Assembly: GCF_001194135.2 (NCBI RefSeq)
Contig: NC_069000.1
Location: 16,221,364 to 16,257,073 of the forward strand
DNA: 35,710 nt
DNA from: Octopus bimaculoides
Taxonomy: Eukaryota
Reading direction: 5' to 3'
Position numbers and translations under genes: made by a program. The notes under the pieces are model-generated. The model ran no database searches, was not told where the DNA came from, and worked only from the letters and a program-made list of their open reading frames with translations. Positions 6,435-34,889 of the stretch are shown in pieces; position 1 is the stretch's first letter, and every line of letters starts with the position of its first letter.

Positions 6435-6483
6435 ATGCTGTTAGCTATGATGATACTGATGATGGCTTCTTACAGTTCGGCCT
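6435..6483 (+). CDS. Gene 1 signal-peptide exon (MLLAMMILMMASYSSA)
   Basis: ATG at 6435 with an in-frame TAA upstream (6423-6425); phase-1 donor T|GTAAGT. Same-length paralogs at 19652-19700 and 32097-32145. Confidence 0.85.
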
Positions 6484-7612
6484 GTAAGTTAATACTAGGA
6501 AAAATAACATTTTCTTCAGTTACAACATTGAATCTTCCTGTGCTAGTTAGATAACATACTTTGATCGGGGTGGCGTGAGTATGTGTGCATGTCTATTATG
6601 TTGTTTGCAAGTAGTAACTGAAACGAGAAAATATGTGCAGAGTAAACATAGAGTCAATTACAGTTGCGTTTTTTTTCTTTCTAATACTTCATATTGTTTT
6701 CGTCGAAGAAGCGTTTAACGCATATCCATTACACACGAAAAATAGTTTTTTTTTTACTTCATATTTCAACTGATTCTTCATTTAAAGCCATTGTCGCGTG
6801 ACAGTGTTCTAAAGTTTTGCATACATGCATACATACATACATACATACATACATACATACATACATACATACATACATACAGAGGCGGAAATAATTCTAA
6901 CCGTATGGCGTTTCATTTGTATTTGTCTAGTTGTTCAAATATATATCAATGGCTACTGTCTTGGCTTACTATTGTCTGAGCCCTTTCAATCTAACCTCCA
7001 CAAAAATCATGTTCGTGTTACATCATAGCTATTTCATCTCAACTGGTCTTTCCTTAACATCATGCCAAGACACAAAAGGGAAATGAAAGATCTCATAACA
7101 CACAAACGTTTCCTGAACGAATGAATATCTTCCAAAAATTCCAAATAAATCATTTACACTCGAATGTATCTCTGCAAACAATAACTCTTTACTGAAAATG
7201 CATGATGCCCATAGAACGGTTATAATATGAAACATCATGAAACGTCTTTTGCAGGTGGTGCTGTTAAGCTAGTCATATCGTGTGCTAATTCTGCCCGAAA
7301 AATATTTTAAAGTTATAGGACAATAAAGTATTTAGATAAAGATAGTCACGGCTGGTTCATAGAGTTACCCAGGATTTCGCGTCCATACAGAACATGGCTT
7401 TACATAAGTATCGGCAGACCCTAATAGCCGGTGACTATGGTTTGACGAGANNNNNNNNNNACATAAGTATCGGCAGACCCTAATAGCCGGTGACTATGGT
7501 TTGACGAGACGTATCTAAATCCAAGCATTTTATAGATGCGAAAACCTGGGTCACCCTATGAAACGGCCATCAACATCTTTATCTAAATGCACGCAAACAC
7601 ACAGACACACAG

Positions 7613-7669
<57 letters not shown>

Positions 7670-7741
7670 CACATACATGCACACACACACACACACATTT
7701 CAGTATGTATGCATGCATACATGTATGTATGTATTTATATA

Positions 7742-7772
<31 letters not shown>

Positions 7773-7859
7773 ATTTGCGTATACGTATGTATGTATCTAT
7801 GTATAAATACATGAATATAAATATGTATACGTACATGCTTGCAATATGATGTTTGCTCC

Positions 7860-8020
7860 ATCTTCACAGATGATTGCTGTATTGCCATCACTTTCAGCAG
7901 ATGATATGAGGAATGAGGTCACCATAAAAAACATCGGTAAATTATTGGATTATACTGATAAACACTTGTATAATACGAATACCGTTACCTCAGTCTCCGT
8001 GATTAGTACCATATCACAGG
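7860..8020 (-). mobile_element. Degenerate RTE-like LINE fragment
   Basis: Minus strand reads L*YGTNHGD*GNGIRIIQVFISIIQ, resembling the RTE motif LLYG.ETW..IR.IQVFIN. Confidence 0.4.
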
Positions 8021-8289
8021 CCAAAGCCAGATGACCAATTAGTACGTGAATATGAAATGCAGAATCGAGCAGATTAACAAAAGTGAATTGCTTGATAAGT
8101 GCGTTGGAGTAAGAAAGGTGTGACAGATAATGAGATAGGGAACTTGTTTGACATAGAGTATCATTTCAGCACAGGAAAGGTGGATAAAGGTAACAGGATA
8201 CCGCAAAAAACTGACGGAAGAATGCATGTTAGAATGTAAGTTATGGGAGAAAGCATAACAGAACTTCAAACACAGTAAAATGCCTAGCC

Positions 8290-8470
8290 ACAAGGTCCCC
8301 TGCCACCTCTTAAAGAGAGGTTCAACATCTTGAGGTCATTCTTCACCACTTCATATCACGTCTTCCTGGATTTCTTTCTTCCATAGGCACTTTCCATAGT
8401 AATCTTTATACAACTGTCTTCATTAATCTGCATCCCATGGCCATACCTGCTCAATCGTCTATCCTGTTTA
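8290..8470 (-). mobile_element. RTE-like LINE 3' fragment
   Basis: Minus strand reads RRLSRYGHGMQINEDSCIK..RKT*YEVVKNDLKMLNL, matching RRLRW.GHV.RM..RPRKTW...V..DL. Confidence 0.65.
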
Positions 8471-8832
8471 CCACGTGATTCCTTTTATGTTCAGTTTTTT
8501 TTTCTCTCTCAGCGCATTTGTACTTTGTCGTACATGCACACTGCAGTTGCTCATCCATCAGAGTACGCTACTTTTATATCTTTCGATTCTTCTGCATCCA
8601 CAAATTTCACTTCTTCGTAGCATTGCTACTTGTACAGAGGCATTATACAATCTATCTTTCAGTCTAGAAATGATGCCTTTTGTTACCAACAGCGAAAACC
8701 ATTTATTCACCATGAATAACTTGTCGTATCTTTTATATGTATGTGAGTTAGTGGAAAAAATCTGGAGCTCAATTTGTGTGTAGTTGAGGTCTCTTTCGTT
8801 ATTTTGAACTTGTATGTGTGTACGTACAAGTA

Positions 8833-8869
<37 letters not shown>

Positions 8870-9119
8870 NNNNNNNNNNNNNNNNNNNNNNNNNNNNNNN
8901 NNNNNNNNNNNNNNNNNNNNNNNNNNNNNNNNNNNNNNNNNNNNNNNNNNNNNNNNNNNNNNNGTGTGTGTGTGTGTGTGTGTGTACAATAGTACATATA
9001 ACAAAAAAATGAAAACCTACAAGAATTTATTAGTGGATAATGTAATCATATATGTAATACATATTTAAATGAACACCCGTCATTTTTATTGGTTTACATT
9101 TTCTTCTCTTTCTTCTCCT

Positions 9120-9192
9120 CATCTTTCTTCTTCTTCTTCTTCTTCTTCTTCTTCTTCTTCTTCTTCTTCTTCTTCTTCTTCTTCTTCTTCTT
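9120..9192 (+). repeat. (CTT)n microsatellite upstream of the gene 1 Ig1 acceptor
   Basis: Direct reading; equivalent tracts lie at about 21565-21610 and 34195-34500. Confidence 0.9.
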
Positions 9193-9258
9193 CTACAACT
9201 ATTTTTACATTTATTTGATAAAAACTATCTCTTTATTGTTGTTTTTTTTTCTATACAG

Positions 9259-9582
9259 ATGTGAGGATTGAAAACATCTACCCTTCCAAAATTATTAATT
9301 TGGGAGACAATTCTGGAATAATTATAGAATGTCAATATAATGTGAGAAATTTTAAGAACCTCCTTCTCATGAAAAGCTACAGCAAAGTCGTTTTCAAAAT
9401 TGATTATGACAAGGAAAAGGATATCTATGCGAAAACAATCCGGAAGGATGGTTTCGACTGTACTTCGATTAATAGTAATGAAGGGCAGATTATTTGCTGG
9501 AAATTGAATCCCACTTGCGAGGATGCGACAACCTATACATGTAGTTCAGCTACCGAATTTTCAAAACCTAAGACTTTAAAAG
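9259..9582 (+). CDS. Gene 1 Ig-like domain 1 exon (atypical V/I-set, 5 Cys)
   Basis: TACAG|AT acceptor and G|GTCAGT donor; 324 nt, phase 1-1, no stops. IIECQY (B strand) and EDATTYTC (DxxxYxC, F strand). Same length in all three paralogs. Confidence 0.92.
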
Positions 9583-10039
9583 GTCAGTTTTAGTAGTCCA
9601 TATTTTTTTTAAAATTTATTCAGCTCCGTTGACATTAATTTTATTTCTATTGCATGTTAATCACACCAATGCTAATTTTCATAATGTTGTTAAAATATAT
9701 TACATTTCTATTCTTTGTTAAATTAATTTTTATAACACCTTGGTCATGCAAAGTAGGTTTCATCTCAGTCGAAGTGAATTTATAGTATTTGTTAGACATG
9801 TCTCAACAATCCTCCTTTGAACTTTAAACACATCATATCACTTTCATACCAGTTGCTGCAGATTGTCTGCCTTTCGTTACTATGGTGTATTATTACATAC
9901 ATATTATTACTAACATACAGAGTGCATTGGAAACACTTTCTTGAGAGAATCAATAGCTCAGTTTTTACAACACATACTCTCATCCCTGCCTTGCTGTACT
10001 CAATAGCGAGTCCATTCAGAGATCATGAATGTTGGGTAA

Positions 10040-10430
10040 TGATTGAAAGAATATGATCGTGAATAAAAGTCGCCGAAATCAGGTTACTCCGAAGGTTGTA
10101 TGAAGTAACGTTTCTCGACAGGGTGCGTAGTTAACCGATCAGGGAGTCTCTCCAAATATCTCGCAGTGTGAGATCACAGCACCAGTGCTATAGACATATG
10201 ATTAGACTGTCGTAGGAAAGAATCATTAGATGGATTCTTCAAGCCGAGCCAAACGGCAAGAGATCTTGGATTATATAAAAATAATCTTAGTTAGACACGA
10301 TTGGGGATCCAACTGGAAAACCTAATGAGGGATACAATGGGGGAGGTGACTACTGACTCAACCCCCACGGCCCTTCCAGGAATAGTGGACGGAAAAAATA
10401 GGTGGATGGAGTCATGATAACAAAACAGGG
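10040..10430 (+). mobile_element. RTE-like LINE 3' end
   Basis: Reads RIKVAEIRLLRRLYEVTFLDRVRS..IRESL..YRHMIRLS.ERIIRWILQAEPNGKR, typical of RTE C-termini. Confidence 0.65.
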
Positions 10431-10749
10431 TTCTTGACCACTTACCTATGTTGAACGAGTATATACGAGTGTGTCAGTATGTATGTATATAAGTATGTGT
10501 GTATGTAAATGTATGCATGTCTACATGTATATATATTTGTGCGTCTGTGTGTAAATATATATGTATCTGTGTGTATATATATATATATATATATNNNNNN
10601 NNNNNNNNNNNNNNNNNNNNNNNNNNNNNNNNNNNNNNNNNNNNNNNNNNNNNNNNNNNNNNNNNNNNNNNNNNNNNNNNNNNNNNNNNNNTATATACAC
10701 ATTTACTTGACTCCATACAGCCTTAGCACTGCCTTTACTAAAAAGTTAA

Positions 10750-11580
10750 ATAGTTGAACACTTCTAAGCACCAGTTCACAAGGTCCAGTAATAAGAATAG
10801 TTGGTGTGTTGTTAAACGTTTAGTTGTGTATGAAGATTGTAGTTTATATTAGTGAAATCGCCTGATCTGTTATTGTGAGACCCTTTTTTCGAGGATTTAC
10901 ATATTTTGAATTGTTTCCTTTTCAGTAAAATCTTACATAAAGAGTCTGGACCTTCTTACCTCGCCCGTTTACGTGAACAAGTTAGCAATCTTCAGATGTA
11001 CAGCATATATCGGTGCACCCTATGGTATTACTGACTTAGTATGGTTTGAACGAAAGCACAATGACACAAATATACGTGTGAAAAAAGTAAACGTTCAATC
11101 ACATGGCAAGTGTTTAGTTCCAGTAGTGTCAATTTATAATTATACTGTAAAAGAGGGGGACGTTGATGAAACAGAAATCTCGTGTTTTGTGAACGGTGCA
11201 TCAATGACTAAATTACTCATCAACAAAACAGGTAGATGATTTTTTTTATCTTCCTTAACGCTTTAACATATTTTTGTCCTTTCACGTCTTATTCAGCGCT
11301 AATGCGGCTTCTCCTGAAACAATATTTCTGGTTCAATTATACCTTCCAATGGATTTGTACATCCACCCACGGTTACATTGACAAGTATATTTATCCTTGA
11401 TAGTTGAACACTTCTAAGCACCAGTTCACAAGGTCCAGTAATAAGAATAGTTGGTGTGTTGTTAAACGTTTAGTTGTGTATGAAGATTGTAGTTTATATT
11501 AGTGAAATCGCCTGATCTGTTATTGTGAGACCCTTTTTTCGAGGATTTACATATTTTGAATTGTTTCCTTTTCAGTAAAA
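10750..11580 (+). repeat. Exact 181-bp direct repeat (10750-10930 = 11400-11580) bracketing the gene 1 Ig2 exon
   Basis: Base-by-base identical; includes the polypyrimidine tract, AG and first 5 exon bases of the Ig2 acceptor. Confidence 0.95.
10926..11231 (+). CDS. Gene 1 Ig-like domain 2 exon (C2/I-like, 3 Cys)
   Basis: TTTCAG|TA acceptor and G|GTAGAT donor; 306 nt, phase 1-1. Motifs IFRCTAYIG, DLVWFE and EISC; sequons NDT, NYT, NKT. Paralog at 23804-24106. Confidence 0.92.
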
Positions 11581-12335
11581 CCAAGTTTATATATTTGCAT
11601 TTCACGATTCTGGATACATTTAGTTGAGATAAGAAGCTGCTTCCTGTAAGAGCCCTGCATCCACAAATACATTCCATATTCCATGATCTGAATAACATCT
11701 TACTTATGGCGGAAATTGTAGTGGAAAAGTCGCGTACAAGCACGGAAAAGCGAACTTTCTTATAGATACATACACACATATGCACGAGCGCAGTACTCAC
11801 AAACGTACGCATGTACACAAGCACTCATATATGCACATACTCACGTACGTACGCATGTACACATGCACGCATATATGAACGTACTCACGTACGTACTCAC
11901 GCATGCATGCACACGTGTTTAGTTAAAATTGGTTCCAGCAATTTGACAAAAGGAAAATACTTCATAAGAGTGCTTCAGTTTATCTGACTGACATAATTTA
12001 ATACTAGTACATATTTCAGAGTTGAAGAGCTAGTGGTAGGAAAATGTATTGCGTGGCAAAGAAATAAACAAAGACATCTATAAAGAAAAATTTTCAATAC
12101 CAGTATAAAAGATTTATATTTAAAAAGTAACAAAATTTATAGACTGAATTTCTGTTCAAGATCCAATTTTGATCATAGCTTTCGATTGTACCTCTTGTCA
12201 TACATATACACATTTTGCTTTGATTTCACTTTCCAATTGGCTGGGAAAAGAGCTGCTTTGAAAACTAAGATAAAAACTTAAATGTTATATTTCCATATAT
12301 TATTTTGTTTAAAATTTTTTAATTGTTATTTATAG

Positions 12336-12374
12336 AAATTGAAGAGGAACGACGCGGAGAAACAAATACTATAG
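12336..12374 (+). CDS. Gene 1 stalk micro-exon a (E)IEEERRGETNTI
   Basis: TATAG|AA acceptor and G|GTATCT donor; 39 nt, phase 1-1. Same length as 14209-14247 and 25225-25263. Confidence 0.72.
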   Translation, partial: KLKRNDAEKQIL

Positions 12375-12580
12375 GTATCTTTTATCCTTTCACTTTTGCT
12401 TCCTTCAGTTATTATACTGTGGCCTTGCTGGAGCACTGTCATAGATGGTTTTCGTCGAACAAATCGACAGCAGTACTTATTGTATCGTTCTCTATTGCTG
12501 AACTGATAAACTGCTGGCGCGTAAACAAATCAACACTGGTTCTTCAGTGGTGGTCGGGAACACACACTGGGACACACTCA
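12375..12580 (-). mobile_element. Old antisense tRNA-SINE 3' part directly after the micro-exon donor (also 14248-14450 and 25264-25470)
   Basis: actgtggccttgctggagcac..tcgaacaaatcgacagcagtacttatt aligns with the young SINE at 22718-22880. Confidence 0.7.
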
Positions 12581-13896
12581 CAAATACACACATACATACA
12601 TGCACACATAGAGACACAGCTTTATAAGTGAAAATGCCATCGCTGTTGACTTTGCCTTCTATCCTTTCACGACGATGAAATAAGTACCAGTTGAATACTG
12701 GCGGCGATGTAATGATGCGCGCGCGCGCACACACGCACACACAGAGACACACACACACACGTACACACACATACAGAAAAACACACCTACCACACACGCA
12801 CATACATTCACACATGTACACACACATACGCACACATGCACACACACATTCACACATGTACACACGCATACACACACATGCACACACACATTCACACATG
12901 TACACACACATACACACACAGCGACTTTTACTCTATACTGGAATATTTAAAGTCATAAATCCGTTTAATATATACAAGCAGATGTCGACTTCAGTGTAAT
13001 TCGAACTTATAATGTAACCAATACATATTCTGCATCCCGAAGGAGTTTTTATGTGGTAAATAGCAGCTAAATCTCCCTCATACCTATTCTATTGTCATAA
13101 AAAAGGAAGTTACATTGGACTATGAAGTCTTACATATAAAATATGAAGAAAAAACACTAATGAAATATCTCTCTAATTATATCTTTCCATTAAAAAATAT
13201 GTATGATTCTGGTTAATATAATTCAAACCATGTCTGAGACAGGTTGGTTACGGAAGGAAAGTCTTCGATCATAGATTAATGTTATCACGAATGATCTTAA
13301 GATCAACAACATAATTCCACTGGCTCCAGCAATTTGACTAAAAAGAAAAAAATACTTTATGAGAACGCTTCAGTTTATCTGAAATAATTAAATACTAGTT
13401 CACATTTCAGAATTGAGGAGCTAGAAGTAGGAAAATATATTGCGTGGCAAGTAAACACCGAAATAAACAAGAACACCGTCTACAAAGAAAATTTTTCCAA
13501 TACAAGTATTAAAGATTTATATTAAACAAAGTAACAAAAATTATAGATTGAATTTCAGTTCAAGATCCAATTTTGATCATAACTTTCGATTGGACCACTT
13601 CTCATATATATATATATATATATATATANNNNNNNNNNNNNNNNNNNNNNNNNNNNNNNNNNNNNNNNNNNNNNNNNNNNNNNNNNNNNNNNNNNNNNNN
13701 NNNNNNNNNNNNNNNNNNNNNNNNNNNNNNNNNNNNNNNNNNNNNNNNNNNNNNNNNNNNNNNNNNNNNNNNNNNNNNNNNNNNNNNNNNNNNNNNNNNN
13801 NNNNNNNNNNNNNNNNNNCACATTTTGCTTTGATTTCGCATTCTAATTTGGAAAATAAAAGTGCTTTGAAATCTAAGATAAAATCTTAAATAATAT

Positions 13897-14149
13897 AGGA
13901 GAGTATTGTAGTTGTAATTCGCTTGAAGAATTGTGTATTGTTTGTAAAGAATAAAAAGTTTACAATGGTACAACAATGCACTATAAAACAAAAAATGGAC
14001 TATATACCTGTTGTAATTTGGTTGTCTATAGTCCGATGATATTTCGGAATTACAATTCCTTCTTCAGATCTTCTTAGCCGGAGTCTCTGCTATAAATGTT
14101 TTTTGTTTTATAGTGCATTGTTGTACCATTCTAAACTTTTTATTCTTTA
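13897..14149. mobile_element. Penelope-like insertion with a 52-bp inverted repeat and an internal hammerhead motif, flanked by a 12-bp direct repeat
   Basis: cttaaataatat at 13885-13896 and 14150-14161; inverted repeat 13944-13995 / 14099-14150 (51/52 identical). Absent from the paralogous intron before micro-exon a. Confidence 0.65.
14035..14070 (-). ncRNA. Candidate minimal type I hammerhead ribozyme
   Basis: Minus strand GAU-CUGAAGA-A-GGAAU-UGUA-AUUCC-GAAAUAUC-AUC has both core boxes, a 5-bp stem II, a palindromic AUAU stem III and a UC cleavage site. Stem I is only 3 bp. Confidence 0.6.
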
Positions 14150-14208
14150 CTTAAATAATATGTTTCCGTATATCATATTGCATTTGATCTTTTAATTGTT
14201 ATTTCTAG

Positions 14209-14247
14209 GAAGTGAACAGAAAGAACTCGTAGAAATTGATAATGCAG
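14209..14247 (+). CDS. Gene 1 stalk micro-exon b (G)SEQKELVEIDNA
   Basis: TTCTAG|GA acceptor and G|GTATCT donor; 39 nt, phase 1-1. The flanking intron is a duplicate of that around micro-exon a. Confidence 0.75.
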
Positions 14248-14551
14248 GTATCTTTTATACTTTCACTTTCGCTTCTTTCAATTATTGAACTGTGATTTTA
14301 CTGGACCAATGTCATAAATGGTTTTCGTCGAACAAATCGACAGCAGTACTTATTGTATCGTTCTGTATTGACGAACTGATAAGTTGCGGGTACGTAAACA
14401 AACCAACACTGGTTCTCCAGCGGTGGCCGAGAACAAATACTAGGACACATTCACATATACACACACAGACACAAATACGCAAACAGAAACACACACACGC
14501 AGACACAAATACGCACACAGATACACACACACATATATATATGTATATATG

Positions 14552-14606
<55 letters not shown>

Positions 14607-16071: not shown

Positions 16072-16109
<38 letters not shown>

Positions 16110-16829: not shown

Positions 16830-16909
16830 ATAAATTATGTGATGCAAACATTATTACTAAGATTTTAACATTTGCGACAATACTCTTTGTTATTGGCAAT
16901 CTTCTTTAA
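16830..16909 (+). CDS. Gene 1 terminal exon, GPI-signal-like tail (D)KLCDANIITKILTFATILFVIGNLL*
   Basis: GTTACAG|AT acceptor, in phase with the micro-exon; hydrophobic run reaching the stop codon. Conserved paralog at 27122-27198. Confidence 0.85.
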
Positions 16910-17404
16910 GATTCTCGAAAAATACCACAGCAAAACCAACCTGGTTAGTATTATATGTTTCATTTTCTTTTCTTTGATGTTTTTTAATTCATCGTTAAGG
17001 TCACCATCCTTCTCTAATGTTTAGATTACCATTCATCGAGCAAAAACATTCGAGTACGAAACATCCCCTCTTTTTACGGACGTCGATCATCTTAGTAAGT
17101 TCTTCTTTACTTCATTCAGTTATTCGACAGCGATCATACCTGGCCACGACCTTGAACAGTCGAACAAATAGATCTTACTACATATTTTTAAGTCTGGTAA
17201 TTATTCGATCGGTCACTATAACTGAACCTCTAAGTTATGGGGCAGTGTACAAGCAACGCTGGTTGTGAAGTACTGGCTGGAGTCAAATACATATATATCT
17301 GCATGCATACATACATACATACATACATACATACATACAAAATGTTTTTGCAACAACTTTTAACCACCTAGTGTCGAAGCGCATCCCGTAGAAAACGAAC
17401 CTGT

Positions 17405-18750: not shown

Positions 18751-18782
<32 letters not shown>

Positions 18783-19582: not shown

Positions 19583-19700
19583 ATGTTTCTGGTTGCTGGA
19601 AGCCTACGATCGTTTCTCGTTCTGCTTTATACTCGTCTTTCAAGATCATCGAAGTTGTTAGCTGTGATGATACTGACAATGGCTTCATACACTTCGACTA
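19583..19700 (+). CDS. Gene 2 leader exon (MFLVAGSLRSFLVLLYTRLSRSSKLLAVMILTMASYTST)
   Basis: Paralog of the signal exon with an A|GTAAGT donor. The homologous ATG is AAG (19652-19654); an in-frame upstream ATG lies at 19583. The start site is uncertain (ATG at 19667 is an alternative). Confidence 0.65.
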
Positions 19701-20021: not shown

Positions 20022-20070
<49 letters not shown>

Positions 20071-21685: not shown

Positions 21686-22009
21686 TTGTTGAGATTGTAG
21701 ATATATCACCTTCTAGTGTCATTAATTTTAGACAAACTACTGCAATAGTTATAACATGTCGATATAATGTGAAAAATCTTAGTGAGTTTCGTCTGACGCA
21801 AAACTTCAGCGAAGTCGTTGTCAAAATTGAATATAACAAGGCTGAAAACGTTTATAAGGAAACAATCCAGAGGAATGGTTTCAACTGTGGTCCTATTCAT
21901 GGTGATAAAGGTGACATTATCTGCTGGAAATTAAATCCCAATTGCGAGGATGCGACATCCTATACATGTAGTTCAGCTAAGGAATCTTCAAAGCCTAAGA
22001 TTTTAAAAG
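21686..22009 (+). CDS. Gene 2 Ig-like domain 1 exon
   Basis: TATAG|TT acceptor and G|GTAAGT donor; 324 nt. VITCRY, GFNCG, IICWKLNPNCEDATSYTC. Confidence 0.92.
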
Positions 22010-23803: not shown

Positions 23804-24106
23804 TGAAACCTTACATGCATAGTCTGAGAGTTGTTAACCCACCAATTAAAGCGAACAAGATATCGATCTTCAGATGTACAGCATATGTCGGTTCACCTTT
23901 TGGTAATACTGACTTTGTATGGCTTGAAAAAAGACATCGTGGTATAAATATACATGTGAATCAAGTATATATTCTACAACGTGACACGTGTTCAATTCCA
24001 GCAGTGTCACTTTATAATTACACTGTAAAAGAGAGAGACATTGGCAGTACAAGCATCTCATGTCTTGTCGAAGATGTATCAATCACTAAAATACTCGACC
24101 CAGCAG
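23804..24106 (+). CDS. Gene 2 Ig-like domain 2 exon
   Basis: TTTCAG|TG acceptor and G|GTAAAG donor; 303 nt. IFRCTAYVG, DFVWLE, DTC, YNYTVKE, SISC. Confidence 0.92.
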
Positions 24107-24968: not shown

Positions 24969-25174
24969 CAGTAATCCTTCGCCATATCGCGTTACACCTA
25001 TCGCGCACTCAGTACATCCTGTATTATTCTGGCTAATATTTGTCAATTTATATCGAGGCTCCTCAGTATATCGCAAGTTTCTGCGGTCGATAGGTATTTT
25101 AATTTTTTTTAGATTTTAATTATTTCCGTGGGAGGTTCTGGAACGTAACACTCATGATAGACGAGGGATTACTG
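24969..25174. mobile_element. 206-bp Tc1/mariner-superfamily (pogo/Tigger-type) MITE
   Basis: TA|cagtaatccttcg ... cgagggattactg|TA terminal inverted repeats with a TA duplication. Absent at the paralogous gene 1 sites. Confidence 0.85.
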
Positions 25175-25224
25175 TATTATGTTTCTATTTACCATTTTGT
25201 TTTCTTTTTTTTTTTTATCTCCAG

Positions 25225-25263
25225 GAAATGATTGGAATCATTTCGGACAAACAGATAATGCAG
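25225..25263 (+). CDS. Gene 2 stalk micro-exon (G)NDWNHFGQTDNA
   Basis: CTCCAG|GA acceptor and G|GTATTT donor; 39 nt, phase 1-1. Confidence 0.78.
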
Positions 25264-25546
25264 GTATTTTTTATCTTTTAACACTTTCTGCTTTCATTTA
25301 TTGGACTGTGGCTGTGCTAGGTCATATTCTTAAATGGTTTTCGTCGAACAAATTGACACCAGAACTTATTGTATCGTTCTCTATTGCCGAACAGATAAGT
25401 TACGGGTACGGAAACAAACCAATATTGGTTCTCAATTGGTGGTGGGGAAGAAATACTAAGACACATACAGATGTGCATACATACATACATACATACATAC
25501 ATGCATACATACATACATATATACATACATACACACGCTCTCTCTT

Positions 25547-25582
<36 letters not shown>

Positions 25583-26199
25583 GCACACACACACACACAT
25601 ACACACATAACACAGACGTATACACAGAGTGCAGTGAATATATTATCGTCTAAATTATACAAAAATGAAAATAACACTGACATCTCATTTTAACAGAGGT
25701 TACCTCTTCCCAGTTCTTGTCTATTAAAATTACATAAAAATATCTTGAAATACTAAAGAGTAAATTTATTCTACACCTCTTTAGTATCGTTATAATCCGG
25801 CTAATTGCTGACGTCATTTGAACTTTTTCATCTCTATTATTGTCTCACACCACACAGTTTCTCGACACAGCCATCACCATTCACAAATGTAATCATTAAA
25901 TCAGCCCCCTCTTGGACGCTAGTCTTCCAACTACGTACCAACTTTCATGTATACCATGATAGTTGACCAACGTCTCTGCAACATTCGACAGGCGATATGA
26001 AGGAGTGATTTCCAGGCAATTAAAAATTTCAGGAGCTGCCATTTTCATTCCAATTTTTCCAAATCGTGCAGCCTCATTGCAGTGATGAAACGACTCTGAG
26101 AGTTCAGAAGTTTGAATGGTTGTTCAAATGATTAGTTATGCCATCGATTAGTTGATTGGTTAATGGATTAACTAGTTCACTAAGAATAAAAATAAGTGA

Positions 26200-27050
26200 A
26201 ATATCCAGGTGTTTACAGACGCAAAAATTAACGAAAGGAACGCATTGGACTTAGGGATTGGTAACTGAATATATAGGCCCATGCCATCCAGTAGCGACTT
26301 GAGGAGCTGGATAGAGAGGCCTGTTAAATTGCTCAGGGGTTGGTTTGGTCTAATCTTCCAGATAGACAAGAACTGGGAAGATGTAACCTCATGTAATTTC
26401 GCTTGCCTGTCGTGCCTTGCTCCACTTCATGGCTGACAACAGTAAAAAGCTTGCTGTTTAGCTTTCTGTGGAGGGAACGTGTTCCGCTTTTCACATGGTA
26501 TGTTTAATAGTTATATACACTGCATAGAGTACAGCGCATGCTGTGACTAACTATGCGCTGATATGCACTGAGGATACGACAGCTCGAGCATTTGTTTGAC
26601 AGTGAGCAATTATGGATGCCGTTTGCTAGATTTCCAAAGCATGTCTCTTTGATAGTTTTACTGTCTTGGATCAAGCCTAGACCGAGGCAGGGTGCCTGGC
26701 TTCTACTGCGTCATCGGGCGCTCACAGCCCTCTATTAGCCGGGTAATGTGGTATATGTGTTGAAGCAAGATATTCTATGGAAAATTAGTGTTTAGTCAAA
26801 GCGACAAAGGCCTCAAGGAAACTCAGGGTGCCGATAAAGACCAACTGGCTTTTCATTCTCAAATGTCTTTCGAGCTAGGTTCCATGGATAATCTATAGAA
26901 ATCTCTTGCCTAGCAGCAGTGCAAAAGAATATCATTGGCGAATACTGCCAACCGCGATTGTCCTAGATGCTCACTGTGTGATGAAACTGTTCTGCATGCA
27001 CTCGCACAATGCTTGAGCATCGATGATTTTTGGAGTAATACTAGGGTCGA
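26200..27050 (+). mobile_element. Degenerate L1/Tx1-like LINE ORF2 fragment in the last intron of gene 2
   Basis: QIDKNWEDV, a FLWRERVP-like motif, and DCPRCSLCDETVLHALAQC..W (zf-RVT-like CCHC). Confidence 0.65.
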
Positions 27051-27121
27051 TACTGGAATCGATTTTCTCCCCACCCACTAATATTTCTGGTCTTACACCA
27101 AACTTTTTCTGTTTATTGCAG

Positions 27122-27198
27122 ATAAATTGTGTGAAGCAAATATTACTAAACTTTTAGCACTTGCTGCACTCCTGCTTTTCCTTGGCAAACATCGTTAA
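27122..27198 (+). CDS. Gene 2 terminal exon (D)KLCEANITKLLALAALLLFLGKHR*
   Basis: TTGCAG|AT acceptor, in phase. Paralog of 16830-16909; the downstream UTR also aligns. Confidence 0.85.
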
Positions 27199-27904
27199 GG
27201 ATTTCGAGGAAAAAACAAAACAGAACAGAAACAACCTGGTTAGCTTTATATGTTTCATTTTCCTTTCCGTAATTTTGTTATCCTTGTATAAAATATGATT
27301 GATTTTGTTTGTTCTCACTGCCTTCCTTTTTCTTTTAATCTCATCGTTGACGTCATCATCTTTCTTTAATGTTTAGATTAGCATTCACCAAGCAAAAGCA
27401 TTTGATCAATGAGACGAAGATCATCTCAACTGGTTCTCTTTTACTTATTTCATGCAATGGACTGCGGCCATGCTTGGTCACCACCTTGAAATGTCGAACA
27501 AATAAATCGCACTACTTATTTCAAGTCTGGTACTTATTCTATCGCCCACTTTTGCCAAACCGCTATGTTATGGGGACGTATACAAGAAACACGTGTTGTC
27601 ATGCGCTGACTGGAGTCACACACGTACATACATACATACATACATACATACATACATACATACATACATACATGCATGCATGCTCATCTACCTACTTAGC
27701 TACCTACCTACCTACCTACATACATACATACATACATACATACATGCATGCATGCTCATCTACCTACTTAGCTACCTACTTACCCACCTACCTACCTACC
27801 TACCTACCTACCTACCTACCTACCTACATACATACATACATACATACATACATACATGCGTACATACAAACATACATAAAGCTAATGATCTGGGAAAAGG
27901 AGAA

Positions 27905-28075
27905 GGAGGCGAGCTGGTAAAATCGTTAGAACACCGAACAAAAAGCTTAGCAGTATTTCGTCCACCGCCGAGGCTGACTTTGCCTTTCATCCTCTCGGGG
28001 TCGACTAAATAAGCACCAGTTGTGTACTGGCCCCTTCCCCCTAAATTTCAGGTCTTGTACCTATAATAGAACAGA
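27905..28075 (+). mobile_element. Degenerate SINE (family A)
   Basis: ggcgagctggtaaaatcgttag..gactttgcctttcatcctctcggggtcgact. Confidence 0.8.
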
Positions 28076-28084
28076 TCTATGAAA

Positions 28085-28530
28085 AGGAAAATACTGTGAA
28101 AAGGAGACCTATTGAAAAATCTTCAGTTGCTCTATCCCGGTTGCAAGGTTAGGTTTATGCCTGTAATTATCAGGGCAATGGGATATGTAACACACTACCT
28201 AAATTATCACTCTTCAGGAATTAGGCTTCTCAAAATCAGAAAGGAGAAAGCTGATTCAAAGTCTACGAATCCAATCATGTCTAGATATGCAAGAATATGC
28301 ATGAGAAGTCGTACATAAAACAAAACATACAAATCTGCACCTATACATACATGCATACATACATACATACATACATACATACATACATACATACATACAT
28401 ACATACGTACGTACGTACGTACGTACATACATGCATACAAAAATACCCTGTCGTTGATGTAGAGATTCCAAAGAAGGAGTCTTGGATCTAGATTAGAAAC
28501 CGGCTTTTTCTTTATTGGCAAGAAATCTTA
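28085..28530 (+). mobile_element. 3' end of a degenerate non-LTR element, paralogous to 1-300
   Basis: Reads LQLLYPGCKVRFMPVIIRAMGYV..GFSKSERRKLIQ, resembling the C-terminus of restriction-like-endonuclease LINEs. Confidence 0.5.
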
Positions 28531-28563
28531 AAATAATATTGAATAATGACATATATATACATA

Positions 28564-29452
28564 CGTGGTCTGTCCAATAAGTATCGGGGCTGTTGCCATA
28601 GTAACAAAGCTAAACCACGCAGAGTGAAGCTGCTTGATTCACCTTGAACTCCGCTTTGCATGCGCACTAAGTTTTACCGTTCTAGCTCATTTGTCCTGTG
28701 TACAGTAGTGGTTCGAAGAAAGGTGTATAGCGTGTGATCGTCGCATTGCCCATGATAGAGAAAGTTGAGCAGAGAATCTGCATCAAATTTTGCCAAAATC
28801 TTGGCGATACTTGCCCAGAGGCCTATGCAAAGTTTTCAAAAGATTTTCATCGTTCTCGATACAGTCAAGAAGATCTTGTGCAACTGAAACCCGAGTGTCA
28901 TTTTGGTCAGCTGTAAACAGTTCTGGCAAAACCTTGGCAGACACGCGTCTCATACCCAAATCTTCTGTGATAATGAACTGAACTGAACCGTAACTAGTCT
29001 GCACATCCTCTGAAACCCACGGATGGTGATTCGACGATTTCCCCTTACAGCTGCACGCACATCTGCGATGTTTTTCTTAGTTCTGCTAGTTTCGGGTCTC
29101 TCAGATCGTTCGTCAATATCGACATATTTTCGGCCATCTTGGAAACGTCTGAACCACTCGGACACTTGTCTATGGCTCATAAACTCCTCTATATACACTT
29201 TTTTGCAACTTAGCGTAGGCCTCTGAGCATGTATCGCTATTACAACTTTATCTGTCATGGTCAATGCGACGATCACACGCTACACGCCTTCCTTCCAAGC
29301 ACTGCTTTAAACAGCGGAAGTCAGCTAGAACATTAAAACTTATTGTGTATGCACAGCAGAGTTCAAGGTCAATCTTAGCCAAGTGGCTTGACTTTGTGTG
29401 TTGTAGCTTCGTTACTATGGAAACAGTCCGGATAAGTATTGATCAGACCTCG
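28564..29452. mobile_element. Non-autonomous mariner derivative with TA TSD and two inverted 5' ends
   Basis: TA|cgtggtctgtccaataagtatcggggctgttgccatagtaac versus gttactatggaaacagtccggataagtattgatcagacctcg|TA. Minus-strand transposase: VSEWFRRFQDGR..DERSERP..NRRITIR and LGMRRVSAKVLP. Confidence 0.92.
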
Positions 29453-30511
29453 TACATACATATATAGTATCTTTCTACATTGGCAACGGTTTCTTTTTCA
29501 TAGGATATTGTCTGATGAACCCCTTCAGCGAAACTTCCAAGTCACAGTTAAGTCACATTTTCCTGGAAATAAATATTCAACACCACACTATGTATTGAGT
29601 GCTTTCTCTATTTACTGCTCGTTGAATTCTGATATTGAAAACATATATAAATGTGTGTGTGTATGTGTGAACACGTATGTGTACCTATGCTCTCGTACAC
29701 ATGCTTCTAAATAGATATAACAAAACAAATTTTCACCTGGAAGTACATAGAGTCTATCTTGTTTTCCCAACTAGAATCTGCTTTCTACAAGGAAGGATAA
29801 GTATATATAAGAACGACACACACTTTTCTATTGATAGGTGTAGTGTAGCGATACTAGAAAGGTATAGGAAAATGTTTAAATTCTTTGGAAATTTTGGTCT
29901 ATCAATCCCAATGGGAACAGATTGCAGATCAGCTAATTTTCTAGATCTATCAGCCTGAAATACAGGATTATATGCACTTCACCATAATCCAAACGAGACT
30001 CTTAGGAATGTGAACACTTTCTCACACCATCCCTGTGCAATTATAAACACTACTAGCAGAGATACCCGGCGTTGCTTGGGATTAAAATGGCATAGTTGTT
30101 TTTTTAAATATATATAAATTACTTTTATATATAAATTATTGCTTGTTGTGTTCAGAGGAGTCAGCTTCGGCACAGGCAGTTAATGCAGATCTCATCAATA
30201 CCTTATGATAGAGCAGAAGTTGTTGACATGGAAAACGTGTTATGCAAGACTGCTTTACTGAAGCTAATGAAACATGTGAAAACTAAACCATAAACGGAGT
30301 TAGTTGACTCCATTCTTTAATGCTCTTATGTTATGTGTGCGTGGGATGTGTTTGTATATGTATTCATGTATATAATGTGTCTGTATGTAAGTATGCATAT
30401 ATATATATATATATATANNNNNNNNNNNNNNNNNNNNNNNNNNNNNNNNNNNNNNNNNNNNNNNNNNNNNNNNNNNNNNNNNNNNTTACCTGTAATTTGG
30501 GATTTTGTCCC

Positions 30512-31594: not shown

Positions 31595-31636
<42 letters not shown>

Positions 31637-31700
31637 TTGTGTGTGTGTGTGTGTGTGTGTTTGTGTGTGTGTGTGCGTGTGTGTGTGTGTNNNNNNNNNN

Positions 31701-31744
<44 letters not shown>

Positions 31745-32096: not shown

Positions 32097-32145
32097 ATGT
32101 TGTTAGCTATGATGATACTGATGATGGCTTCTGACACTTTCGCCA
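32097..32145 (+). CDS. Gene 3 signal-peptide exon (MLLAMMILMMASDTFA)
   Basis: ATG at 32097; phase-1 donor A|GTAAGT; the first 12 residues are identical to gene 1. Confidence 0.88.
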
Positions 32146-32359: not shown

Positions 32360-32475
32360 TATACATGTATATCTATATAACTTTTACATCTACATTATAT
32401 AAATATATATAGCACGCATGCATCTACATATATATAATATATATAAATACATATATATTTATATATGTATGTATG

Positions 32476-32708
32476 TTATTTCTTTACTACCCACAGGGGG
32501 CTACACACAGAGGGGACAAACAAGGACAGACAAACGGATTAAGTCGATTACATCGACCCCAGTGCGTAACTGGTACTTATTTAATCGACCTCGAAAGGAT
32601 GAAAGGCAAAGTCGACCTCGGCGGAATTTGAACTCAGAACGTAGCGGCAGACGAAATGCCGCTAAGCATTTCGCCCGGCGCGCTAACGTTTCTACCAGCT
32701 CGCCGCCT
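32476..32708 (-). mobile_element. Full-length SINE (family A)
   Basis: Reverse complement of the 17922-18151 family, ending in ccagctcgccgcc. Confidence 0.92.
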
Positions 32709-33003
32709 TGTATGTATGTATGTATGTATGTATGTATGTAGGTAGGTAGGTAGGTAGGTAGGTAGGTATGTACGTACGTGCGTAGCATGTGTGAGCGTGC
32801 ATGCGTTTTATGTTGTTTGCAGGTATTCAAACAAGAAACAAAATGTGCAGTCACTATTTGTATAAGAGTAAATTTAGAATCATCACAGTTTTTCTAATAG
32901 TTCGTAATGTTTTCGTCGAAGAGGCGTTCATCGCATATCCATTACACATTATATATTATCTGATATTCATCGTTTTAGACCATTGTTGCGTGACATACAT
33001 ACA

Positions 33004-33058
<55 letters not shown>

Positions 33059-33372
33059 TGGCTGCGTCTCATGTTTCCGAGCTTGCAATCCAGTTCATTT
33101 TCCTGGGTGTTTGAAGCGCAGATGGCTCTGTAATCCAAGGGTTGCATGAAACATACGGGGACATTGTGGACAAGGGATAGAAGGAGCTGGTTTGGGAAGG
33201 AGAAAGCGCTGCTTTCTCTCCCGTCTCTTGAGTTCAGCTCTTGCGACTCGGGCTTTCTTGAAGTCCGCAGAACCTATTTTGATGGTGTGTCTCCAGAGGG
33301 GTCTGTTTGCCGAGATATCTTCCCAATGTGCAGGGTCGATGCTGGTGCTTTTCAGGGTTGGCAAGAAACCTT
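33004..33372 (-). mobile_element. 5'-truncated RTE (BovB-like) LINE 3' end with an (ACT)n tail
   Basis: Minus strand IDPAHWEDISANRPLWR..CPQCPRMFHATLGLQSHLRFKH* (C2H2 finger), stop at 33095, short UTR, then an (ACT)n tail at 33004-33058. Confidence 0.85.
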
Positions 33373-33374
33373 GA

Positions 33375-33790
33375 GGTTTCTTCCATACCGACAACATGAC
33401 CCACAAGAATGGAAGGATTTTCATAACCATTATGTGATAACACAGATTTGAAGCTAACCTTACTCGAGTCTATAAACATCCTCCATTCATTAGCCACATG
33501 CACATGTCCTAGTTTTTGCATGGGTGCATTAATATCAGTACAGACACAAGCATTATTTTCTTGCTTGAAAAAAGCAGATAAGCCTTCATGGCGAGAACGG
33601 AAAATGGAAATTTTCGTACCTTGTTGTAGGAGATTCCGTTGTTGTAGTTTGGATGCCAAAACTTCTGCCCTCTCCTTTGACAATGCTAGGTCTCTTGCTA
33701 AATCGTTCAAAACTTCTTGATTAAACTAGCCTGGCTCATTTTTTTCTTAGAATCAACTACGTACTCTTCATCGTGTGACGTGTCAAAATT
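33375..33790 (-). mobile_element. DNA transposase fragment, probably Chapaev-3-like (CMC)
   Basis: LNDLARDLALSKERAEVLASKL..EWRMFIDSSKVSFKSVLSHNG matches a widespread DDE transposase motif set. The superfamily assignment is from memory. Confidence 0.6.
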
Positions 33791-33879
33791 TTCAAGTGAA
33801 GCATGTGAGACAGGGAACTGGGATAGGGTTCTCGAAGTCACCTATGCACACATACACACACATTAACTCTATCTTTTCT

Positions 33880-33918
33880 TTCTCCTCCTCAACTTTGCTC
33901 TTCGTTTTCTCCTTTATT

Positions 33919-33962
<44 letters not shown>

Positions 33963-34500
33963 TTTTTCTCTCTCTCTTCTGCTTCGTCTTCTTTTACTTT
34001 TCCTTTTCATTTTATTTCTTCTCTTCTCATCCTCCTTCCTCCTTTTTCTTTTTTTTCTCTTCTCATTGTTTCTCCCTTTTCTCTTACTCTCCCTTTTCTT
34101 TTTCCTCCTCGTCTTTAGTGTTCGTTTTCTTTTTTTCTTTCTTTCTATTTTCCCCTTCTCCTGCTCTCCTCCCGCTCCCTTCCTCCTCCTCCAGCTCCCC
34201 TCTTCTTCTTCTTCTTCTTCTTCTTCTTCTTCCTGCTCCCCTCTTCTTCTTCTTCTTCTTCTTCTTCTTCTTCTTCTTCTTCCTCCTCTTCCTGCTCCCC
34301 TCTTCTTCTTCTTCCTCTTCCTGCTCCCCTCTTCTTCTTCTTCTTCTTCTTCTTCTTCTTCTTCTTTTTCTTCTTCTTCCTCCTCTTCCTGCTCCCTTCT
34401 TCTTCTTCTTCCTCCTCTTCCTGCTCCCCTCTTCTTCTTCTTCTTCTTCTTCTTCTTCTTCTTCTTCTTCTTCTTCTTCTTCTTCTTCTTCTTCTTCTCA
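33880..34500 (+). repeat. Pyrimidine-rich compound tract: (CTTT)n, (CTT)n and a cctgctcccct minisatellite
   Basis: Direct reading; almost no purines on the + strand. Confidence 0.9.
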
Positions 34501-34565
34501 GTTGTCCTATAAATATTTCTATATTTGTTTTNNNNNNNNNNTTTTTTTTTTTTTTTTGTATACAG

Positions 34566-34889
34566 TTTTTGAGATTGTGCATATGTCACCTCCTGATATT
34601 ATTGATTATGGATACACTTCTACATTAGTAATAATATGTCGGTATAATGTGAAACATTTTGATGAGTTTCTTCTCATGCAAAACGACAACCATGCCGTTC
34701 TCAGACTTAAATATTACTCGCATGAAAATTACTTTTATAAAGATATCCAGCGGGATGGTTTCGACTGCACTCCAATTAAAGGTTATAAAGGGCAGATTAC
34801 CTGTTGGAAATTTAATCCCACATGCAAGGATGCGGCAAACTATACATGTAGGTCGGCTACCGAAACTTCAAAACCGAAGACTTTAAAAG
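34566..34889 (+). CDS. Gene 3 Ig-like domain 1 exon (rest of gene outside the window)
   Basis: TACAG|TT acceptor and G|GTCAGT donor; 324 nt. IICRY, GFDCT, ITCWKFNPTCKDAANYTC. Confidence 0.92.

Follow-up and report, generated by a model that had tools for sequence, protein, structure and literature searches.

The window, a 35.7-kb stretch of Octopus bimaculoides chromosome CM046620.1 (~16.22-16.26 Mb) analysed here as a whole, carries three paralogous genes arranged head to tail on the forward strand. Matched phase-1 exons had been proposed for them in the first-pass annotation, and this arrangement was borne out: all 13 exons have an open frame, every junction has AG acceptor/GT donor sites, all frames and splice sites are intact, and the internal exons of all three genes are of phase 1-1. 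The exons are the following.

6435..6483, + strand: gene 1 exon 1, start codon and 16-aa leader (signal) peptide MLLAMMILMMASYSSA, followed by a GT donor
9259..9582, + strand: gene 1 exon 2, V-type Ig domain (D1), 324 nt, phase 1-1
10926..11231, + strand: gene 1 exon 3, second Ig domain (D2), 306 nt, phase 1-1
12336..12374, + strand: gene 1 exon 4, 39-nt stalk mini-exon, copy a
14209..14247, + strand: gene 1 exon 5, 39-nt stalk mini-exon, copy b, whose D-N-A end is a candidate GPI omega site
16830..16909, + strand: gene 1 exon 6, DKLCDAN spacer, 19-aa hydrophobic tail and stop, a GPI-signal-like propeptide
19583..19700, + strand: gene 2 exon 1, with an upstream ATG that places 23 extra residues ahead of the leader
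21686..22009, + strand: gene 2 exon 2, V-type Ig domain (D1)
23804..24106, + strand: gene 2 exon 3, second Ig domain (D2)
25225..25263, + strand: gene 2 exon 4, single 39-nt stalk mini-exon with D-N-A end
27122..27198, + strand: gene 2 exon 5, GPI-signal-like tail and stop
32097..32145, + strand: gene 3 exon 1, leader peptide
34566..34889, + strand: gene 3 exon 2, V-type Ig domain; the remaining exons lie outside the window

Joining the six exons of gene 1 yields 837 nt, corresponding to 278 amino acids and a terminal stop, free of internal stops as previously claimed, and both length and stop match the annotated gene. The five-exon join of gene 2 (861 nt, 286 aa, stop present) was also reproduced; it corresponds to NCBI LOC106880715 isoform X1, and its translation is identical to the NCBI XP protein P0003. 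The first two exons of gene 3 form an open frame that continues past the window end, and the annotated 265-aa gene begins at the ATG that had been assigned to it. In the public annotation, the 278-aa and 286-aa genes stop at the same codons as our gene 1 and gene 2 models, and the latter also shares its start ATG with gene 2. NCBI places genes 1 and 2 in one locus; annotated isoform X6 skips the gene 1 Ig2 exon (10926..11231), and gene 1 minus this exon is identical to annotated isoform P0002. By inspection, the gene 1 leader, which is conserved in paralogs, carries the small residues S and A at positions -3 and -1. The counterpart of its ATG is lost in gene 2 (Lys), and the 23-aa N-terminal extension of gene 2 may impair the signal peptide.

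Comparison of the Ig exons with family proteins by tblastn gave E-values of 1e-10 to 1e-80 (~1e-65 to 1e-80 for each gene's own product), which excludes chance resemblance. Since the exon models match existing gene models, the genes are uncharacterised rather than unannotated. The description of the family as hidden by splicing was therefore not upheld, NCBI and UniProt having already modelled the genes as 'uncharacterized' or 'Ig-like domain-containing'. The database entries for the window genes or their neighbours are LOC106880715 (X1, X6), LOC106880707/09/13 and UniProt A0A0L8FXF0, and our literature search found no paper that mentions any of them.

The window contains 13 N-runs, all of which are in introns or spacers (0/13 in or touching an exon). 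The gap nearest an exon (34532-34541) is 24 nt ahead of the gene 3 Ig1 acceptor, and no reading frame of the three genes spans a gap. Gene 2 exons 2-5 lie on a single gap-free piece (21391-30417), and the order Ig1-Ig2-stalk-tail is thus established without any scaffold join. The six exons of gene 1 are distributed over five separate pieces, so that their order rests on scaffolding; an extra symmetric exon could be hidden in gap 13629-13818 or 15104-16071. The flanks of the mini-exon at 12336-12374 are similar to those of 14209-14247 and 25225-25263.

The predicted structures show a V-type Ig domain followed by a second Ig domain. A full-length AlphaFold (AF2) model displayed pLDDT values of ~90 across both domains, and a Foldseek search with it returned 861 PDB matches at E<=1e-3, topped by Fab chains and butyrophilin ectodomains. 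The model of D1 alone, calculated for gene 2 (pLDDT 94.5), was closest to antibody V domains and nanobodies, with TM values of 0.6-0.7; the fold of gene 1 D1 is assigned via this paralog. Among 17 family members, C64 of D1 is present in >=90%, and C134, D128 and Y132 of D1, as well as C172, W187 and C234 of D2, are invariant. Cysteines of the B and F strands, the motif D-x-x-x-Y-x-C, the Trp of D2 and the extra cysteines are all invariant or present in >=90% of these members, and the family cysteine pattern comprises five residues in D1 and three in D2 (eight kept in total); D1 has no obvious C-strand Trp. The exon organisation is also that of the IgSF, with domain exons of 324 nt and 303/306 nt in phase 1-1 and a separate leader exon. 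By contrast, Pfam Ig HMMs (V-set, I-set, Ig_2, Ig_3, C2-set) gave no match at E<=10 for the window proteins and, among the 17 members, only marginal values in a few (E 0.017-0.06), none reaching threshold; a PDB profile search gave marginal Ig matches (E about 1e-3). The family is too divergent for current Ig sequence models, and its assignment to the IgSF consequently rests on predicted structure and motifs, with fold, cysteine/motif pattern and exon phase pointing to membership and curated HMMs giving no significant match.

At their C-termini, the window genes encode ...D-N-A, then DKLCDAN, then IITKILTFATILFVIGNLL and a stop. The D/N-N-A motif is common to these genes and their close paralogs, whose tails all stop 2-4 residues past the hydrophobic stretch, with no cytoplasmic part. 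Judged by inspection, the terminal hydrophobic stretch, polar spacer and small omega/omega+2 residues of a GPI signal are present, and the last exon looks like such a signal. More distant members carry textbook tails (SGSG...SKWVLVVNLILLLL..ISR; SGSG, a spacer and a Leu-rich tail) behind Thr-rich stalks. Most family members keep a membrane-anchor exon, and two have a true TM segment and cytoplasmic tail. The layout put forward in the first-pass annotation (signal peptide, two Ig domains, GPI-type tail) was thereby recovered, in that leader, two Ig folds and tail are all seen; we infer GPI anchoring from the sequence of the tail, and a tail-anchored single-pass TM protein with a cytoplasmic stub of 2-4 residues is a possible alternative.

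Three further terminal exons were identified:

17025..17095, + strand: alternative terminal exon used in UniProt A0A0L8FXF0, non-hydrophobic, not conserved in the other units
29504..29599, + strand: conserved alternative terminal exon 3' of gene 2, GYCLMNPFSETSK...*
2037..2099, + strand: alternative terminal exon of the paralog 5' of gene 1, AYCLIQRIFQVTANSRFSRK*; its other exons precede the window

The exon at 29504..29599 has homologs in the C-terminus of paralog isoform P0014 and in 2037-2099; the latter shares 71% identity with the C-terminal end of LOC106880707 isoform X2. We saw no annotated gene 2 product that uses 29504..29599. This soluble-type exon is kept as DNA with an open frame in two window units and is used by annotated paralog isoforms; lacking a hydrophobic tail, it would give a soluble form.

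The three-gene family proposed initially consists of real tandem paralogs, but three was an undercount: the array holds at least 8 paralogs over ~125 kb and extends past both window ends. The annotated array genes encode 278, 286, 265, 263, 223, 242, 239 and 263 aa, all on the + strand, up to a MORN gene, and more clusters lie on the same chromosome (at 43.39 Mb and LOC128250265-7). A profile search of 1.84 billion protein representatives retrieved 45 relatives; the 22 for which the source was checked come from octopods (three Octopus species and Argonauta), with the exception of one bivalve protein, a weak, generic Ig match. In searches of the protein library, none of the known conserved families yielded a one-to-one ortholog, and gene 1 shares no more than 52% identity with any match from another species. 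These results support the suggested lineage-specific expansion, with a range narrower than the cephalopods: among the sources looked up, and bar the weak bivalve match, it is Octopoda, the absence from squid, cuttlefish and Nautilus depending on the representation of their proteomes in the libraries searched. The family is thus octopod-restricted so far, and has grown by local duplication.

The mean pairwise dN/dS, calculated by NG86, which ignores transition bias and AT-rich codon usage, was 0.98 for Ig1 (bootstrap 0.69-1.30) and 1.28 for Ig2 (bootstrap 0.96-1.78); by bootstrap neither is significantly above 1, and the whole-domain value for Ig1 is indistinguishable from 1. Genes 1 and 2 share 75% identity in exons and 81% in non-coding DNA, a comparison limited to BLAST-alignable and hence conserved non-coding DNA, while indel columns amount to 1.5 per 100 nt in exons and 10.4 per 100 nt in non-coding DNA. 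Variable positions showed no enrichment in loops over strands, indicating that there is no CDR-like pattern.

Two other explanations of the array were considered. The 13 gaps and the split of gene 1 over five pieces could suggest one gene assembled repeatedly from haplotypes or mis-scaffolded contigs. The copies, however, differ by ~25% in nucleotides and ~50% in amino acids, far above allelic variation, gene 2 exons 2-5 are contiguous on a gap-free 9-kb piece, and similar multi-copy sets exist in the independent O. sinensis and O. vulgaris assemblies; the probability of such an artefact is negligible. Almost as improbable is that the array is decaying DNA, whose duplicates drift neutrally (dN/dS about 1) with no present function. 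An Ig1 value statistically the same as 1 is what decay would produce, and introns and spacers are full of transposon fragments and microsatellites, but all splice sites are intact and indels are ~7-fold rarer in exons than in flanking DNA. Furthermore, neutral simulation on the observed tree left all ORFs open in 0/2000 replicates; the full set of five D1 cysteines survived in 0/2000, and that of the three D2 cysteines in 1/2000. The invariant residues show normal silent divergence (dS 0.28-0.39) with zero replacement.

Taken together, dN/dS values of about 1.0-1.3, exons diverging beyond alignable introns, and maintenance of ORFs and eight cysteines suggest diversifying recognition receptors, and we consider it probable that this octopod IgSF tandem family constitutes a set of diversified surface and soluble recognition molecules. 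Each product would be a glycosylated two-Ig ectodomain of about 230 residues, most likely tethered to the outer cell surface through a GPI anchor attached at the conserved D/N-N-A with which the stalk exon closes. Use of the alternative last exon without hydrophobic tail would generate a secreted form, and in-frame skipping of the Ig2 exon a one-domain form. The family expands via local duplication; over most of D1 and D2, amino-acid replacements accumulate at least as fast as silent changes, and the eight cysteines and a few framework residues are fixed. The outcome would be a diversified surface or soluble binding set with ligand-facing surfaces driven to change, of the kind seen in immune-type recognition or other arms races.

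As to what is recognised, a dN/dS of about 1 or higher would suit immune-type or arms-race recognition better than conserved neural wiring. A tentative and more specific proposal is that the family is an octopod invention of germline-encoded V-domain receptors, surface-bound and soluble, that recognise pathogens or non-self on haemocytes or barrier epithelia. If true, the array would be to cephalopods what FREPs are to snails, VCBPs to amphioxus or butyrophilin/SLAM-type receptors to vertebrates, with diversity generated by tandem birth-and-death and positive selection, by exon skipping and variable stalk mini-exons, and by a GPI/soluble switch. Drosophila Dprs/DIPs and the expanded octopus protocadherins are thought to act as wiring codes, and the octopus proteins could instead form a combinatorial code of two-Ig GPI proteins labelling neurons, or sucker or skin cells. 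Leader, two Ig domains and GPI-type tail fit such a role, the TM and cytoplasmic tail of some members could signal, and tandem arrangement recalls cephalopod protocadherin genes, which form clusters (PMC9068888). We nevertheless regard a neuronal or adhesion code as unlikely, given that no sequence-level or fold-specific Dpr/DIP link was found, that dN/dS is about 1-1.3 and that best cross-species identity is only about 50%. Molecules of neural wiring usually evolve under purifying selection and have orthologs that can be recognised in related species. Somewhat less likely still is another fast-evolving extracellular role, in gamete or mate recognition or as secreted binding proteins of mucus, salivary gland or sucker epithelium. 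The conserved soluble-isoform exon would suit it, and high dN/dS with lineage-restricted tandem expansion, as seen here, is typical of reproductive and secretory proteins; against it, there is no specific pointer to such a role and most members retain the membrane-anchor exon. Within the favoured reading, the window genes are candidates, as yet unstudied, for a receptor set that serves recognition, possibly of an immune type.

Known two-Ig and V-domain families provide a frame for comparison. The first-pass annotation had invoked the Drosophila Dprs, and signal peptide, two Ig domains, C-terminal hydrophobic/GPI-type end and multi-gene organisation are indeed shared. The likeness stops at layout: Dpr/DIP chains were absent from the PDB profile search at E<=1 and from the top 50 fold matches. 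With no such match, and with the significant homologs looked up being octopod (bar the weak bivalve Ig), membership of the Dpr family was rejected. Dprs are conserved across insects, unlike the octopus family, which is without close orthologs even between Octopus species. The best two-domain superposition (IgV + IgC) was obtained with butyrophilin/B7 proteins (BTN3A1-3, bovine butyrophilin; target-normalised TM-score 0.56-0.58), which are likewise tandem, fast-evolving and immune-modulatory families and are 12-15% identical to the octopus proteins. Membership was rejected, as butyrophilins possess a TM segment and, in most cases, a B30.2 domain inside the cell, and the window genes have neither.

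Gastropod FREPs and amphioxus VCBPs carry V-type Ig domains and are lineage-restricted, tandemly expanded and rapidly diversifying in animals without antibodies; both are secreted and lectin-like, FREPs with a C-terminal fibrinogen domain and VCBPs with a chitin-binding domain. The octopus genes appear to have a GPI-like tail instead, without a fibrinogen or chitin-binding exon or domain, and we rejected FREP membership on the grounds that no member has a fibrinogen domain and the CDS ends after stalk and tail. The vertebrate CD2/SLAM family members CD48 and CD58 are small glycoproteins of the cell surface in which a V-type Ig domain at the N-terminus is followed by a second Ig domain; they carry a GPI anchor (CD58 exists in alternative GPI and TM forms), are encoded in a tandem, quickly evolving gene cluster and act in immune cell-cell recognition. 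They have no detectable sequence relationship to the octopus family and are absent from its top fold matches. Any likeness is convergent architecture within the IgSF, the octopus family having its own pattern of five D1 and three D2 cysteines.

The exon joins proposed in the first-pass annotation were all recovered: gene 1 (6435-16909) yields an 837-nt reading frame for 278 aa and gene 2 (19583-27198) an 861-nt frame for 286 aa, each with a stop codon at its end, while the first 373 nt of gene 3 (32097 onward) are open and all internal exons are of phase 1-1. Every exon of the three genes is preceded by a pyrimidine tract and AG and followed by GT. None of the 13 N-runs in the window lies in or touches an exon, all being intronic or intergenic, and therefore no reading frame crosses a gap. 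Exons 2-5 of gene 2 sit on a single gap-free piece (21391-30417), so that the order Ig1, Ig2, mini-exon and tail is proven without any scaffold join. The six exons of gene 1 are spread over five assembly pieces, and their order thus depends on scaffolding together with collinearity with gene 2; since every internal exon is symmetric, an additional gene 1 exon may be hidden in the gaps at 13629-13818 or 15104-16071. In gene 3, the gap at 34532-34541 stops 24 nt short of the Ig1 acceptor, and the pyrimidine tract and AG beyond it are intact; locus L001 reads N past the window end, so the exons that follow Ig1 are absent from it.

The genes had been described as hidden by splicing, which does not hold, since NCBI and UniProt already model them, though without names. 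The window sequence is identical to ~16.22-16.26 Mb of chromosome CM046620.1 in Octopus bimaculoides assembly GCA_001194135.2. In the public annotation, genes of 278 and 286 aa share the stop codons of genes 1 and 2, and the starts of the 286-aa gene and of a 265-aa gene coincide with the ATGs of genes 2 and 3, respectively. The gene 2 translation is identical to NCBI 'uncharacterized protein LOC106880715 isoform X1', gene 1 minus its Ig2 exon corresponds to 'isoform X6' of the same locus, and exons 1-5 of gene 1 joined to an exon at 17025-17095 give UniProt A0A0L8FXF0, an 'Ig-like domain-containing protein'. A single NCBI locus, LOC106880715, thus takes in both genes over 6435-27198, gene 1 as isoform X6 and gene 2 as isoform X1; this lumping may stem from read-through or chimeric transcript evidence, or may be a merging artefact. 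Literature searches of ~8.3 million papers by topic and by locus or accession identifiers returned no description of the family, and a term search of the paper on the O. bimaculoides chromosome assembly gave none either. What is new here is therefore not the existence of the genes, but their characterisation in terms of fold, anchor type, isoform logic, array extent, taxonomic range and mode of evolution.

Sequence searches gave little indication of the fold. The three window proteins had no Pfam match at E<=10, no match among 17 family members passed the threshold (Ig_2, C2-set, V-set and Ig_3 hits were marginal), and a PDB sequence search returned no match; a PDB profile search gave marginal (E ~1e-3), generic Ig hits to Fab light chains, Fc-gamma-RII, CD22 and CEA. 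Modelled together with 8 relatives, the gene 2 protein is predicted to form two all-beta domains (pLDDT ~90) flanked by low-confidence helices at the N-terminus (leader) and C-terminus (tail). Foldseek matched this model to 861 PDB chains at E<=1e-3, led by Fab V-C chains and butyrophilin IgV-IgC ectodomains (TM 0.56-0.58). When the N-terminal domain (D1) was modelled alone from 18 sequences (pLDDT 94.5), its best fold matches were antibody V domains and nanobodies (TM 0.6-0.7, identity 9-15%), and we therefore assign D1, on its predicted structure, to the V type.

When 17 members are aligned, the Ig hallmarks appear as C64...D128-x-x-x-Y132-x-C134 in D1 and C172, W187 and C234 in the second domain (D2), together with a family-specific signature, G-F-x-C107, C119-W-K, C126 and C210; D1 carries five cysteines and D2 three. 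The classical gene plan of the immunoglobulin superfamily (IgSF) is a leader exon followed by one domain per phase-1 exon, and the window genes follow it. The two Ig domains proposed earlier are thus supported by confident predicted folds, cysteine motifs and exon plan, and the proteins belong to the IgSF by these three measures, a membership that current HMMs do not show. The family thereby exposes a blind spot of profile libraries, Pfam being silent on proteins whose predicted structures are confident Ig folds.

The last exon codes for DKLC(D/E)AN and a hydrophobic stretch of 17-19 residues and nothing else, the protein stopping 0-4 residues further on. The last residues of the mini-exon before it are D-N-A (one paralog has N-N-A), an ending that the window genes and their close paralogs share in their stalks. 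By inspection, these residues read as a candidate GPI signal, with D or N as omega, A as omega+2, a 7-residue spacer and the hydrophobic tail, in which case the final exon would encode exactly the cleaved propeptide. The alternative is a transmembrane (TM) anchor without a cytoplasmic tail. In the wider family, one O. vulgaris and one Argonauta member carry a true TM helix, followed by a cytoplasmic tail of 39-120 residues. Distant members on the same chromosome display textbook tails (SGSG...SKWVLVVNLILLLL..ISR), some of them behind Thr-rich mucin-like stalks. Of the GPI-type layout put forward in the first-pass annotation, the hydrophobic tail is present as described, and GPI is the anchor suggested by sequence inspection; the tails of the wider family support a probable surface location. 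A GPI-type tail exon also lies at 23097-23174 of locus L003, downstream of the gene for LOC106880713 isoform X2 (P0005), a 223-aa model that ends right after Ig2 and probably has a longer, anchored counterpart.

In two units of the array, a conserved alternative terminal exon, termed 'YC', follows the GPI-type exon at a distance of ~2.3 kb:

2037-2099, 'YC' exon of the paralog upstream of gene 1, coding for AYCLIQRIFQVTANSRFSRK followed by a stop
29504-29599, 'YC' exon 2.3 kb past the gene 2 tail exon, coding for GYCLMNPFSETSK... up to a stop

Both copies have an AG acceptor, are open in phase 1 and encode an 'xYC...' peptide with no hydrophobic tail, matching the non-hydrophobic C-termini of annotated paralog isoforms (P0007 and P0014). 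Their use would yield putative soluble isoforms. The gene 1 copy may lie inside the gap at 18789-19476. Unlike the 'YC' exon, the alternative exon at 17025-17095 of the UniProt model (P0001) is not conserved in other units, and annotated isoform X6, a putative isoform taken from a gene model, skips the Ig2 exon. The 39-nt stalk mini-exon is present in two copies in gene 1 (12336-12374 and 14209-14247) and in one copy in gene 2 (25225-25263); the downstream intron flanks of the gene 1 copies are ~86% identical and the exons only 64%, and the doubling is an internal duplication. We note that exon 1 of gene 2 (19583-19700) has Lys in place of Met at the ATG homologous to the gene 1 start, and that gene 2 begins at an in-frame ATG 69 nt upstream, gaining 23 residues from sequence that is 5'UTR-like in gene 1.

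Downstream of the window, called genes of 263, 223, 242, 239 and 263 aa follow on the forward strand as far as an oppositely oriented MORN-repeat gene. The array thus comprises at least 8 called genes over ~125 kb, with at least 1 further gene upstream, and the chromosome carries more clusters of the family, one at 43.39 Mb and others around LOC128250265-7. A profile HMM search of all 1.84 billion representative proteins gave 45 matches at E<=1e-3. For 22 of these the source was seen, and 21 come from O. bimaculoides, O. sinensis, O. vulgaris or Argonauta hians, the exception being a bivalve Ig protein that matches weakly and in part (E 3e-5); a word-indexed homolog search with a wider alignment found 4 proteins and no further taxa. 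A lineage-specific expansion, as suggested initially, is therefore upheld insofar as the library covers squid, cuttlefish and Nautilus proteomes. The best cross-species identities (52% for gene 1, ~48% for gene 2) are no higher than those to neighbours in the same array, and no known conserved family thus stands in a one-to-one relation to them, a relation named at the outset as speaking against such an expansion.

The mode of evolution was analyzed on six Ig1 and five Ig2 exons of the array. Pairwise Nei-Gojobori dN/dS averaged 0.99 for Ig1 (range 0.80-1.26) and 1.32 for Ig2 (range 0.87-1.68), with unsaturated dS (0.24-0.55), and the ratios of mean dN to mean dS, with codon bootstrap intervals, were 0.98 (0.69-1.30) and 1.28 (0.96-1.78), so that dN > dS was not significant for either exon. 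These values are far above those of ordinary purifying selection. In Ig1 18 columns and in Ig2 15 are invariant; their silent divergence is normal (dS 0.28-0.39), but they show no replacement. Since the average reaches about 1 or more despite clear constraint on some sites, we infer that the remaining sites exceed 1 on average. Drifting pseudogenes are ruled out by HKY simulation along the observed NJ tree, in which neither the full set of open reading frames nor the five D1 cysteines survived in any of 2000 replicates. An assembly artefact is rejected on the gap check and on the distance between genes 1 and 2. Their exons are 75.2% identical (JC K 0.30) and thus more distant than their alignable non-coding DNA (81.2%, K 0.22), and hold ~7-fold fewer indel columns per 100 nt (1.5 versus 10.4). 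Variable residues are not concentrated in CDR-like loops, strands and loops being alike (Mann-Whitney p 0.65 and 0.70). By inspection of the alignment, variation is greatest over the first two-thirds of D1, and the C-terminal part of the domain is conserved (C-W-K...C-E-D-A-x-x-Y-x-C...S-K-P-K).

The family consists of uncharacterised, lineage-specific, tandemly expanded IgSF proteins, probably surface receptors, already present as anonymous gene models. We propose that small glycosylated V+Ig ectodomains would be shown on the outer leaflet, probably via GPI, alongside soluble variants, as a germline-diversified repertoire whose surfaces change fast. Membership in the Dpr, butyrophilin/B7, CD2/SLAM or FREP families was considered and set aside, as Pfam, PDB profile and fold searches gave no specific sequence link; the extras that define some of these groups, such as the butyrophilin B30.2 domain and TM segment or the FREP fibrinogen domain, are lacking in the window family. 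The nearest molecules in architecture and behaviour are GPI-linked V-C2 proteins (CD48, CD58) and butyrophilin-type ectodomains.

Of the original interpretation, an expansion for immune or neural recognition, the structure and the lineage restriction stand. As to the role, fast surface change is typical of recognition arms races, as in immune-type receptors, self/non-self systems and reproductive proteins, and is not what conserved wiring labels of neurons typically show; an immune-type or other arms-race function therefore appears preferable to a Dpr-like neural code. Neuronal expression, if true, would make the family a candidate cell-identity code beside the protocadherin expansion. To our knowledge, cephalopods, for all their large brains and long-lived tissues, lack an antibody system, and hardly any of their recognition receptors have been identified. 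The family offers a concrete candidate set for immune-type recognition, being taxonomically restricted, V-domain-bearing and tandem, and changing as fast as neutral sequence or faster while its cysteine scaffold stays fixed.

Scans of the window for Rfam families and tRNAs gave no hits. Its spacers and introns hold the following repeats and transposon-like sequences:

3657-4771, forward strand, decayed hAT-type transposase-like sequence in two ORFs (DUF4371, E 1e-4, below the Pfam cut-off), in the spacer upstream of gene 1
17387-17918 and 18223-18393, 21-nt minisatellite (~26 copies, 63% matches) and 90-nt repeat, in the gene 1-gene 2 spacer
28950-29276, reverse strand, mariner/Mos1 transposase N-terminal HTH-like fragment (HTH_48, E 3e-4, below the cut-off), in the gene 2-gene 3 spacer
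33095-33710, reverse strand, a pair of overlapping ORFs (111 and 158 aa) with a transposon-like look, in gene 3 intron 1
8830-8869, 15060-15103, 18750-18788, 31599-31741 and 34201-34498, examples of microsatellites flanking assembly gaps

Neither ORF at 33095-33710 has a Pfam match, and one contains a C2H2-like CPQCPRMFH motif. A 192-aa ORF at 18171-18749 mostly reads through the 90-nt repeat and simple sequence. Microsatellites (TA, CA/GT, TACA, TCT) flank many of the assembly gaps, as expected at short-read assembly breaks, and the one at 34201-34498 is a long TCT/CTT tract just upstream of the gene 3 Ig1 exon.
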